The notes under the pieces are model-generated. The model made no database searches and had not been told where the DNA came from. It saw only the letters and a program-made list of their open reading frames with translations. 64,000 nt of DNA. Origin: Setoptus koraiensis. Its lineage: Eukaryota > Animalia > Arthropoda. The first letter of the stretch is position 1. Each line of letters starts with the position of its first letter. Shown one piece after another: positions 37,301 through 41,841 of the stretch. The DNA lies in the NCBI GenBank assembly GCA_048013815.1, contig CM106585.1:16120001-16184000 (forward strand), written 5' to 3'. Position numbers and translations under genes: made by a program.

Positions 37301-38451
37301 GATACAATTCAACGATAAGCATCATATATTTCCGGCACAATTAGTGAGTCTGTTGATGGATTACAATGAGTGCGAACGCAACATCGTGTTCTCATTATCC
37401 ATATTTTCAGCAATAGAGAAAGAAAGAGAGAGAGATAGAGAGAGAGAGAGAGCTTGTGAGTGTCTTGACCCAGTCAGTTCGACACCGCAATCGTTTGCAG
37501 TTGGGGTGCTGGCCAGTTGCCGTCGCACAGCCCAGTCGAATGTGCTAGAACTAAGTTCTGTGCGCTCACTGCCAGAACCCGGGTGCGCAACTCAAAAAAG
37601 CCAAGTCCAGTCCACAGAACGCAAGTCCCGAACTTCAGGACCTGAACGGCAGGCTGCACTGCAGTTTGCAAGTCGATGAATTTGTGTGTTTGTGTGCTTG
37701 TGTTTGAGTGTTTGTGTGTGTTTGTGTGTGTGTTTGTGTGTGCATAACTGTGTATGTGTAATTGTTCCTGTGGGCAAGCCAACAGGAGCAGCAGTTCTTT
37801 TTGCATTACATTTTTATACATGGAGATTCCACATAGACAATAATGAGTTTTACAATAAAAACTGCAACAACAACAACAACAGCAGCAAAAACGATGATAA
37901 TAGCAATAACGAACAATCAATCCAGTATAACTTCGTCTACTAGATAAACTCCTTGCCAGATTTAACAAATGAATCACATTGGAATTGAGTGACAACTACT
38001 CACTAGCACATCGGAGGTCGATCTATTTCCTATTAGACAAGACCATCACAATAATAATATTATTTGTAATAATAGCTATTCACGGAATAAAGGCCAAATA
38101 AAACAAAATAATGAAGTGCACACAATATAACACCAGATAACGATATTATTATTATTATCATTGTTGTTGATCACATCTTATTATAGACGAGGCGAAACAA
38201 TTTTAGTTTCGCAACAACACAACAAAAACGACCTAAAAAGAAATCATTTATTTTCACACAGAATCAACCGTCGGCTGTTTATCCAACTAAAATGAGTAGG
38301 TGACCAGCATTATATACATATACATATAAAACATTACTCTAACTCTTCCATTTACACATTTATCATAACATTCCCCATGTTGAGTAACATCGATTCTGTC
38401 TCTATCTTACGAGTAGTGACGCACAACAATATAGGTGTATAGAATTCAAGA

Positions 38452-40059
38452 ATGGCTAATATTCAATTTGCAACATCAAAAATCAATAATTGGGAAGAGT
38501 CCATCACTTTTCAATTAAAAAATCGTAAACTAAGAGAACAAACTCCATTTGAAGATATATATGCATTCACGGGTGTCATATTCGACAAGATAAACACATT
38601 CAAGAGTGATAAAAATTTATACAAACTACAAGAAGAATTAGCTGAACTGCTTAAACGAAAAAATGATAATGCCCAGAAATTGATAGATCTTAAGAATAAG
38701 CTGGATGAAGAGCTAACTAAAAATCGACAGTTGGCCACCAGATTGGATGATCGCGATCACGAGCTTATGCTGGCTAAAGAACAATGTGAACAATATAAAA
38801 AAGAAATTGTCAAACTCGAGGAACGAGTACAGCTGACCCAAGACGAGTACCAGACTATGCAAATCATGTATCACACCATGTCCAACAAATATCAGAAACT
38901 GAATATAGATCATCAAAATATTTTGAATAGATACATGGAGTTAAAGAAAGAAGACGCCGAAAGACTAAATGCTGAAAATGAAAAAGGCATACAAGAACGC
39001 CTCAAACGACAGGTAGAAGGTGTTTCAAATGATTTAACCAGAATTCAGGTAGCTCAGGTCGCTTCCGAAGACTCAGGTCCGATGGTTGCTGCTGTTAGCT
39101 CCTCAGATGGTGTAGAGAATGTTCCAGGTTCACCATTCGACATGTCTAAAGTGCCTAGTAGTGTGAGTTTTGTCTTTGAGGCGCATGACGGAGAAATTGA
39201 TGCTGTCAAGTGGTTCAATCGAGAGAGCACTCGCGAAGACCTTGTGGCTACTGGCGGAAGTGATCGTAAAGTAAAGCTTTGGAAGATTTCTGATACCATG
39301 GCGACGAAGCAATTTTCTCTGCTTGGTAGCAATGCCAGTATAACTTCAATAGATGTTGAGAATGACTTTTTGTTAGCTTCTTCAAATGACTTTGCCAGCA
39401 GAGTCTGGGTACTATCTGAACAAAAGTTGCGAAGAACCCTGACTGGACATTCTAACAAGGTGATGGCGGTGAAGTTTCTGGGAACACCTAACAAGATTGT
39501 TTCAGGCTCACATGATAGGACACTTAAAATATGGGATATTAATAGGAATGCATGCGTTCGAACTCTGTTTGCCGGTAGTAGCTGCAACGACTTGGTTAAT
39601 AACCATATTGCTTCTACTGTTATATCTGGTCATTTCGACAAGAGAATACGATTTTGGGACACCAGAACAGATAGCACCGCAAACGAAGTTCAACTTCAGG
39701 GCAAAATAACTTCCTTAGACATATCTCCTGGAACTATGACTCTTTTGTGCTCGATAAGAGATGATACCATAGAAACACTTGACCTTAGAACTAATCATGT
39801 ACTAAAAACCTACACAGCTGACAATTTCAAGATTTGTTGCGACTATTGTAGAGCGAAGTTCAGTCCAGACAATCAACTTATCGCATGCGGATCCAGCGAT
39901 GGATCAACTTTCATTTGGAATGTCAATAACTCCAAAGTGGAAAAGATCCTCTCGGAACCGAGCAAAGGATCGTCAAATGTTGTAGCGTGCACCTGGTCAC
40001 CGAACGGCAAGAATATGATCACAGTAGATAGAAATAAGAAAGCTACTATATGGACTTGA
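38452..40059 (+). CDS. ATG16L1: Autophagy-related protein 16, 535 aa, intronless CDS
   Basis: N-terminal ATG5-binding-type helix (WEESITFQLKNRKLRE), coiled coil, then WD40 repeats: FEAHDGEIDAVKW, ATGGSDRKVKLW, LASSNDFASRVW, TLTGHSNKVMAVKF, VSGSHDRTLKIWD, FAGSSCNDLV, ISGHFDKRIRFWD, ACGSSDGSTFIWN. Confidence 0.96.
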   Translation: MANIQFATSKINNWEESITFQLKNRKLREQTPFEDIYAFTGVIFDKINTFKSDKNLYKLQEELAELLKRKNDNAQKLIDLKNKLDEELTKNRQLATRLDDRDHELMLAKEQCEQYKKEIVKLEERVQLTQDEYQTMQIMYHTMSNKYQKLNIDHQNILNRYMELKKEDAERLNAENEKGIQERLKRQVEGVSNDLTRIQVAQVASEDSGPMVAAVSSSDGVENVPGSPFDMSKVPSSVSFVFEAHDGEIDAVKWFNRESTREDLVATGGSDRKVKLWKISDTMATKQFSLLGSNASITSIDVENDFLLASSNDFASRVWVLSEQKLRRTLTGHSNKVMAVKFLGTPNKIVSGSHDRTLKIWDINRNACVRTLFAGSSCNDLVNNHIASTVISGHFDKRIRFWDTRTDSTANEVQLQGKITSLDISPGTMTLLCSIRDDTIETLDLRTNHVLKTYTADNFKICCDYCRAKFSPDNQLIACGSSDGSTFIWNVNNSKVEKILSEPSKGSSNVVACTWSPNGKNMITVDRNKKATIWT

Positions 40060-40195
40060 TAGATCAGAATCGATATATACACTTAGCGTCAGTTGTGAAA
40101 ACTCAACTCCTATCCCCCCCTCTACCGTTAAGTAAAATGCGCGAATGGAGCGACATTTACTAATCATTCTTCTTTTATCTTCTTTCTCTCCATAG

Positions 40196-41841
40196 CTCAA
40201 AAAAACGATATTTTAGATGATTTATTGGACACACAGGATGAAGACGAGTTTTCTGTTGAGCTCGCGGGACGTATGGTAGGGTGCCCCGGTATTGGTTATA
40301 GAATGACGTTCAAGCCTACGCCAAAACCAGTCGGCAGTGACAATCTCGATACAGATGTTGAACAATTAACGAGCTTTAAGCGCAAGCAATCTTCACGTGC
40401 AGAGGCAATTAGAAATAATATCACAGCTCAATCTAAAAGACGAAGGCGTTGTGACAGTGATGAAAAATCACCAAGCAAAGAGGACATAGACTCTAAAACT
40501 TTATCGCCAACAAAAAGTGGTTCTGTAGAAGTCTCGCATATCAGAGCGAGAGGTTCACCTCATTCAGAATCTAGCACAAACCCTCACCCAGACATGATTG
40601 ATTGTGGTTCTAGCGATACGTGCTCTTGCGCAAATCACAGCAGTGTAGAAGGAGAGCCGGGCGAAGTATCTGATAGTTCCGATATCCAAAGACCTCCAAC
40701 AGGGACATCAGAGTCGACAAAAGGAAATCATATAACCCAGAAGAATTGTACACAGAAGATATCAAATGATAAAATACCCGCGGAAAATGGTTCTGAACCT
40801 GATAGAAATGAATGTGAAGACTCCAGCAAAAGAAATTTGAGGAAGCACCACCAAGCTCATAAAACTATGCACAAAGAGAAGAAGCGGAAAAGAGACTATC
40901 CAAGTCTAATAAAGTATTTCTTTAAGGATGCTTGTTATTTCTTAATGAAGAGCAACAATAGAGACAATATCGATCTTTCTAAAGCGAAAGGCGTATGGTC
41001 AACACCTCTACAGAACGAAAGTAAATTGAACAGAGCCTTTCGTCATTTTTCAAATGTGATTCTTGTATTCAGCGTCAAACAAAGTGGAGCATTTCAAGGT
41101 TTTGCGCGCCTCTCCTCAGAATCGGATTCTGATCCAACTCATCAGATAGACTGGGTTTTGCCTCAGGGATTAAGTAAGCGCTCACTGGGAGGTGTATTTA
41201 ACATTGATTGGATTTGTACAAATGAATTGGTATTTTCTGAGACATTACATTTATATAATCCCTTGAATGAAAGCAAGCCAGTAAAAGTGGCAAGAGATGG
41301 CCAAGAAATAGACGAAAGAGTGGGTAGGGAACTGTGCAGATTGTTTCCACCTGACGATACTATTGATTTGATCTCAATAATCAAATTCATGAAGTCTCAG
41401 ATCAAGCACAGATGTAAATTGAACCAGAACCGAAGAAATGATCATCACCAGGACGGAATTTCTCGAAAAGATCACACGTCGTCCTCCTCCCAGTCTTCAT
41501 ATTATGAGGGTCGCCAGAGAGCAGCTTTACATAAGCATGGCATAAATCATGTCTCTAGATCGATAGCTTACGATTACAATCCTCATAACGTTGATCCCTA
41601 TAGCTCGTATAGTTCTTACAACCATCATGCATCTAGTGCAGCTGCCTATCCAGATTACAGTCATGTTAGAGGGAACGGTGTGCCACATAGACAGCTAGGA
41701 TACTCTTACAGTGGCGAGAGGGCTTACAATACTATTAGTTCTAAGTATAACAATTTTTATGATTACCCCAGACCTATGCATATCACGAGGTCAGCTTCGT
41801 CACACAGGTTATCAAGCCATCGTGATAGAAGAAGAATGTGA
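40196..41841 (+). CDS. YTHDC1: YTH domain-containing protein 1 (nuclear m6A reader); main exon, first exon and start codon not located with certainty
   Basis: YTH domain [32 protein letters not shown]...[20 protein letters not shown]...IDWVLP.....LGGVF.IDWI...[17 protein letters not shown] with the W/W/L cage retained. N-terminal NDILDDLL resembles human NVLDDIL. Exon opens at an acceptor TACTAAT..ttctttctctccatAG (AG at 40194-40195). Confidence 0.93.

Follow-up and report, generated by a model that had tools for sequence, protein, structure and literature searches.

Genes that lie on the same strand within an intron of a host gene and share the first exon of that host are, to our knowledge, rare. 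The textbook case is the cholinergic locus, in which VAChT is nested in the first intron of ChAT, the corresponding pair in C. elegans being unc-17/cha-1. Arthropods also produce dicistronic mRNAs, including those of Drosophila stoned and Adh/Adhr. A conserved overlapping pair that encodes unrelated proteins and has a common first exon has been described for POLN and HAUS3 (PMC4591814). Here we examine a further pair, ATG16 and YTHDC1, in a window of 64,000 nucleotides (nt) from the mite Setoptus koraiensis (assembly GCA_048013815.1, contig CM106585.1, positions 16,120,001 to 16,184,000 of the forward strand). Positions are counted from the first letter of this window, and all elements of the two genes lie on its + strand. 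An initial annotation of the same DNA had proposed that the autophagy gene ATG16 sits in the first intron of YTHDC1, a reader of N6-methyladenosine (m6A), and all of its coordinates and sequence details proved correct when checked in the sequence. Our analysis indicates that the two genes probably form a host and nested pair of the cholinergic-locus type, with ATG16 in YTHDC1 intron 1, two donors, one acceptor, one promoter, a shared 3′ end, and an origin in the acariform ancestor.

Transcript evidence came from four contig runs mapped on positions 36900-42700. Contigs of runs X6 and X7 are confined to 37899-~41790, with zero depth in about 1,700 nt of flanking sequence (36900-37870 and 41944-42700). 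The joint 38295->40196, which the initial annotation had predicted, is present in an X6 contig as a GT..AG junction that skips 1900 nt (depth 6.7, no ambiguous letters), and because this exact joint is found the observation is more than chance. The sequence removed is YTHDC1 intron 1 (38296-40195; 1900 nt, GTAGGT...AG, phase 1), with the whole ATG16 gene inside it on the same strand. The joint thereby confirms that ATG16 lies entirely in the first, phase-1 intron of YTHDC1, and it places the YTHDC1 start codon in an exon upstream of ATG16, as had been proposed.

This first exon, hereafter E1, covers at least 397 nt (37899-38295) in X6 contig record 4, which runs on for 30 nt into 40196-40225. 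It probably extends to about 37862, as the contig has another 37 letters, which lie within a masked CAA repeat. E1 ends with the YTHDC1 ATG (38292-38294) and one further base, the A at 38295 (phase 1), in a good context for initiation (actaaaATGA, with A at -3), just before the donor GTAGGT at 38296. E1 words were fully contained in runs X6 and X8, and none were found in seven older RNA-like contig runs with the species label of X6 and X8, a label also borne by nine raw-read RNA-seq runs from 2026 (X12-X20; oligo-dT or poly(A)). Apart from ATG plus A, the entire YTHDC1 coding sequence lies in exon 2 (40196-41841, ending in TGA 41839-41841), which includes an NDILDDLL motif and the YTH domain. 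When E1 and exon 2 are spliced together (form a), the product translates without a break from ATG plus A through the whole YTH open reading frame (ORF). Exon 2 is opened in phase 1 by an acceptor AG at 40194-40195 that is preceded by a pyrimidine tract and, 32 nt before the AG, by a branch-point-like TACTAAT (40158-40164). Upstream the frame is closed by a TAA at 40129-40131, and the first in-frame ATG, at 40273, falls past the conserved motif.

A second X6 joint, 40087->40196, is likewise GT..AG (depth 7.29). It removes a short intron of 108 nt (40088-40195) whose donor, GTCAGT, lies 28 nt past the ATG16 stop, and whose acceptor is common with intron 1. The contig carrying this joint is continuous with the 3′ coding sequence of ATG16, RNA-like contigs were found along the ATG16 ORF, and no X6 contig falls within 40088-40195. 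The resulting RNA (form b) contains the whole ATG16 ORF followed by the YTHDC1 body without a start codon. Since donor 40088 is joined to 40196, the ATG16-containing RNA is spliced onto the YTHDC1 body and does not end in the 136-nt gap between the ATG16 stop and the acceptor; given this second donor, the choice at the locus is therefore one between two 5′ splice sites, and not one between splicing and 3′-end formation in the gap. Form a lacks ATG16 and form b lacks the YTHDC1 ATG, meaning that two donors and one acceptor yield mutually exclusive coding RNAs. The depth of the exon-2 contig (15.5) is about that of the two junction contigs added together, and these crude contig depths are suggestive only of two RNA forms of similar abundance.

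The gap behind ATG16 contains an AGTAAA at 40131, and neither AATAAA nor ATTAAA occurs in it or anywhere in 38515-40907. The first canonical polyadenylation (poly(A)) signal past the YTHDC1 stop is an AATAAA at 41881-41886, likely the 3′ end signal of both genes, and from this distribution of signals we infer that ATG16 RNA ends together with YTHDC1 RNA. A spliced-leader operon was also considered and rejected: only cis joints occur at 40196, and the sole loose end corresponds to a sequencing adapter at 40249.

These elements suggest the following mechanism. Use of the distal donor at 38296 skips ATG16 and builds the YTHDC1 reading frame, and use of the proximal donor at 40088 retains the ATG16 ORF and joins it to the YTHDC1 body. 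The ATG16 RNA would lack a separate 3′ end; it would run to the AATAAA at 41881, with the YTHDC1 sequence trailing behind its ORF untranslated. A single promoter would give rise to both classes of RNA, and the choice of 5′ splice site would set which protein is made.

Both proteins were identified from their domains and relatives, the nearest named proteins being just 44-65% identical. The YTH domain (PF04146) was detected by Pfam at residues 247-383 with 142 bits (cut-off 22.1, E = 1e-41), and the top named matches of the ORF are arthropod YTH domain-containing protein 1 (YTHDC1), not YTHDF or YTHDC2. Alignment by eye with mite orthologues places an (E)ERNVLDxLL-type motif at the N-terminus of the window protein; the initial annotation had likened its LDD(I/L)L segment to the N-terminus of human YTHDC1, a resemblance that we presume to hold. 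The GVWST and IDWIC stretches, which are the site of the cage tryptophans in relatives, are both found, and m6A binding and a nuclear location are predicted. ATG16 is encoded by an intronless ORF of 535 amino acids (aa; 38452-40059) with an ATG5-binding N-terminus, a coiled coil, and a WD40 propeller. Pfam scores reach 67 bits for the ATG16 coiled coil (PF08614, cut-off 33.7) and 99.8 bits for WD40, and the ATG5-binding N-terminal helix, NWEESITFQLKNRKLREQTPFED, can be aligned with tick and mite proteins.

The closest relative available is a Logan contig (L001) with the same gene order as the window, in which the ATG16 (P0121) and YTH proteins are 94% and 85% identical to those of S. koraiensis. 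Donor 40088 and the acceptor are both kept in this contig, where they bound an intron of 105 nt. Identity to the window is 93% over the 28 nt from the ATG16 stop to the donor and 76% over the intron, and TTCTAAT stands in place of TACTAAT.

The same arrangement, which the initial annotation had proposed to look for in related mites, was found in four other acariform genera: in Oppia nitens, Halotydeus destructor, Brevipalpus obovatus, and Tetranychus urticae, the first intron of YTHDC1 is in phase 1 and contains an intronless ATG16. In all five genera this phase-1 intron is situated just ahead of the NVLDxLL motif. The Oppia nitens annotation places ATG16 (10375-12093; 572 aa, one exon) within the YTH gene (10001-15356); E1 there consists of the ATG plus 28 coding nt and a phase-1 donor, and the acceptor lies 300 nt past the ATG16 stop, with an AATAAA in that gap. 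Halotydeus destructor shows the order E1, ATG16, acceptor, and its E1 has 28 coding nt and the same AAAG/GTTTGT donor as Oppia. For T. urticae and Brevipalpus, only a splice that begins at a donor within the ATG16 ORF reproduced the RefSeq YTHDC1 N-termini, such that ATG16 and YTHDC1 have a common start codon, with 15 shared codons in T. urticae and 28 in Brevipalpus. Because the start codon is shared, the promoter must be shared in these two species as well, and to judge from the gene models the use or non-use of the donor inside the ATG16 ORF must decide which protein is made.

Beyond these genera, ATG16 and YTHDC1 form a tandem pair in Sarcoptes and Dermatophagoides, with ATG16 immediately preceding YTHDC1 in the same orientation and the YTHDC1 ATG in a large exon. 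In the tick Ornithodoros turicata, the ATG16 gene spans 21 kb with at least 15 exons and is located on another chromosome than the YTH gene, and no ATG16-like sequence was found in or within 10 kb of that YTH gene. ATG16 is intronless at every acariform locus examined. Together, this distribution suggests that the arrangement was already present in the acariform ancestor and would have originated when an intronless, retrocopy-like ATG16 landed behind the first exon of YTHDC1. The acariform copy appears to be the sole ATG16, as known from the loci examined rather than from a lineage-wide search.

Several annotations of these relatives deserve comment in their own right. The GenBank Halotydeus protein named 'Autophagy-related protein 16-1' (P0019, 799 aa; L002 9321-12943) is an ATG16-YTHDC1 fusion model that uses a weak donor, TGGA/GTCCTA. 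The Halotydeus ATG16 ORF also shifts frame near 9950 and is split into two gene calls, which may reflect either an indel in the assembly or a short intron. In Sarcoptes scabiei, the YTHDC1 orthologue (P0018, L005 10001-12313) is called 'synaptojanin-1' in GenBank; it has a YTH domain, and the name looks wrong. Synteny extends beyond the two genes. Oppia, Sarcoptes, and Dermatophagoides have a Menorin_N gene downstream of the pair in the opposite orientation; Oppia and Halotydeus have a Cdc14-like phosphatase gene (DSPn/DSPc) upstream of it; and Oppia, Brevipalpus, and T. urticae have a PAN/CUT gene in its vicinity.

How ATG16 transcription starts in S. koraiensis is the point at which an alternative has most to offer. 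ATG16 could be an independent nested gene transcribed from a separate promoter within the 156-nt spacer (38296-38451) that follows the E1 donor and precedes the ATG16 start codon, E1 then serving YTHDC1 only, and the acceptor and 3′ end being shared for want of a terminator. An X7 contig (38305-38500) shows that the spacer is present in RNA. Its first letter lies 10 nt beyond the E1 donor and could correspond to an independent start of ATG16 RNA. In addition, no contig runs unspliced across 38295/38296, so that an E1-ATG16 link is absent from the contigs, and the spacer includes a TATAAAA (38325-38331). An RNA sharing its start with YTHDC1 would moreover bear five short upstream ORFs (uORFs) ahead of the ATG16 ATG, and would be poorly translated. 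Three of these are in E1 (37894-38140, from a script scan), upstream of the YTHDC1 start codon, with ATGs at 37894 (17 codons), 37969 (7 codons), and 38111 (9 codons). A 3-codon uORF (MSR-stop, 38292-38303) is opened by the YTHDC1 ATG itself when the E1 donor is left unspliced, and one of 21 codons (38377-38442) occurs only in RNA that retains the spacer. Yet the X7 contig begins upstream of the TATAAAA, which is the only TATA-like motif in the spacer, a spacer of 156 nt leaves a promoter very little space, and the ATG16 start codon lies inside E1 in T. urticae and Brevipalpus, where the promoter is shared. Overall, we regard a separate ATG16 promoter as a rather doubtful possibility, and the spider mites, the short spacer, and the position of the X7 start incline us towards a single promoter in this species. 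The initial annotation had further suggested that the E1 donor could use proximal AGs in the spacer (38412-38413 and 38415-38416); the X7 contig is unspliced through both, and no joint to either was seen in the contigs, whose depth is low.

Besides the start of the X7 contig, the missing E1-ATG16 link, and the uORF load, the nature of the data also weighs against a nested pair with two donors and one promoter. Each junction is represented by one contig of one run (X6), the contigs give neither strand, ends, nor quantities, and the RNA nature of X6 and X7 was inferred from their coverage pattern and not recorded. E1 was not recovered in L001, where the 541 nt upstream of ATG16 are unalignable to the window with MAFFT or blastn and the contig then ends. 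With one contig per joint and a short side of just 30 nt, which equals the word overlap length of the assembler, the joints might be artefacts, due either to chimerism of the contigs or to a deletion variant in the DNA. This is very hard to reconcile with two exact GT..AG joints onto one acceptor, with no letters fitting both sides and the frame restored, and with the recurrence of the intron and its phase in independently annotated genomes. A local YTHDC1 first exon overlapping the ATG16 3′ end, the competing structure put forward in the initial annotation, fares no better: an ATG at 40050, a GTAAAA donor at 40132, and a 64-nt intron would suit the phase (82 nt, phase 1), but no such joint was seen, and the observed joint 40087->40196 is out of frame with ATG 40050, which in form b meets a stop after 20 codons. 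Furthermore, GTAAAA is replaced by AAAAAC in L001, and 5/7 substitutions in that frame alter the amino acid. On the missing joint, the unconserved donor, and the frame of the observed joint, we rejected this exon as extremely unlikely.

A more elaborate version of the nested pair would add regulation. YTHDC1 has an established influence on the choice of splice sites and poly(A) sites, and the protein might act through m6A to bias donor choice and set the ATG16:YTHDC1 ratio. The conservation of the ATG16-YTHDC1 linkage across Acariformes and a GGACT motif at the ATG16 stop (40052-40056) are circumstantial points in favor of such a feedback switch. However, coding constraint accounts for the motif, and the ATG16 stops of Oppia, T. 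urticae, and Halotydeus lack it. Long-range pairing that could bring the E1 donor to the acceptor was not seen either, as inverted repeats were of at most 15 nt and none flanked ATG16 sensibly. A regulated switch of this kind therefore seems improbable to us. The same low standing applies to the broader proposal that the locus has been one unit since the acariform ancestor, in which splice choice between ATG16 and YTHDC1, with YTHDC1 feeding back, would couple autophagy capacity to m6A reading; we consider it a long shot.

Other features of the window are recorded here as separate observations. GT/CA and CAA microsatellites occupy 37409-37898, directly upstream of or at the 5′ end of E1, and their masking hides the true 5′ end. 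Compared to L001 (ENIQLNLQVEKLQQQ...), Oppia, and the tick, the window ATG16 is without about 69 aa where the coiled coil begins (at 38600-38615); this segment is kept in the Oppia and tick proteins and is also absent from T. urticae ATG16. The gap is not an assembly error, since an X6 contig (38477-38774) fits the genome gaplessly. Downstream of YTHDC1 lies an Asn/Ser-rich, low-complexity ORF of 1312 aa (43150-47088), with no Pfam family on record and a counterpart of 1317 aa in L001 (5648-9601).

Full-text searches, which extended to mites and Tetranychus, returned no description of the ATG16-YTHDC1 linkage, and the papers that named Atg16 together with YT521-B were m6A/autophagy reviews only. 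The pairing is nonetheless implicit in RefSeq models. One consequence is that several public gene models of the locus are wrong or incomplete, as illustrated by the Halotydeus fusion protein, an ORCAE model of T. urticae with an intronic start, and ORF-caller models beginning within the pyrimidine tract. T. urticae, in which RNA interference and RNA sequencing are routine, would offer a tractable system for promoter sharing and splice-site competition.

Among described systems, POLN/HAUS3 differs in that the two are vertebrate multi-exon genes, with no intronless ORF nested in one intron. Nematode-type spliced-leader operons resemble the window in having two same-strand genes that are separated by about 100 nt without an intervening poly(A) signal; here, however, two genomic donors are spliced in cis to the acceptor, and no leader-like loose end was seen at 40196. 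Form b resembles a dicistronic mRNA to the extent that two long ORFs are borne on one RNA, but its YTHDC1 ORF has no start codon and is probably untranslated, and hence is no true second cistron. A closer parallel is provided by intronic retrogenes that borrow the promoter or first exon of a host, since the acariform ATG16 is intronless, as opposed to at least 15 exons in the tick, and sits directly behind the host 5′ exon. It departs from them in that this copy appears to be the only one, and divergence is too great for a poly(A) remnant or target-site duplication to be recognized. The closest likeness is to the cholinergic locus, which also combines a same-strand intronless gene in the first intron of its host, a shared 5′ exon, alternative processing that yields one protein or the other, and deep conservation. 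Three differences stand out: ATG16 and YTHDC1 are functionally unrelated; E1 supplies the host start codon and, in spider mites, also the first 15-28 residues of both proteins; and in the window the nested ATG16 seems to lack a separate 3′ end and is joined by splicing to the body of the host gene. It is unusual for an autophagy factor to be paired with an unrelated RNA-modification reader, and for a host start codon to be split from its body by a nested gene. With these differences, ATG16/YTHDC1 looks like a second deeply conserved case, after the cholinergic locus, of a nested gene that shares the first exon of its host.

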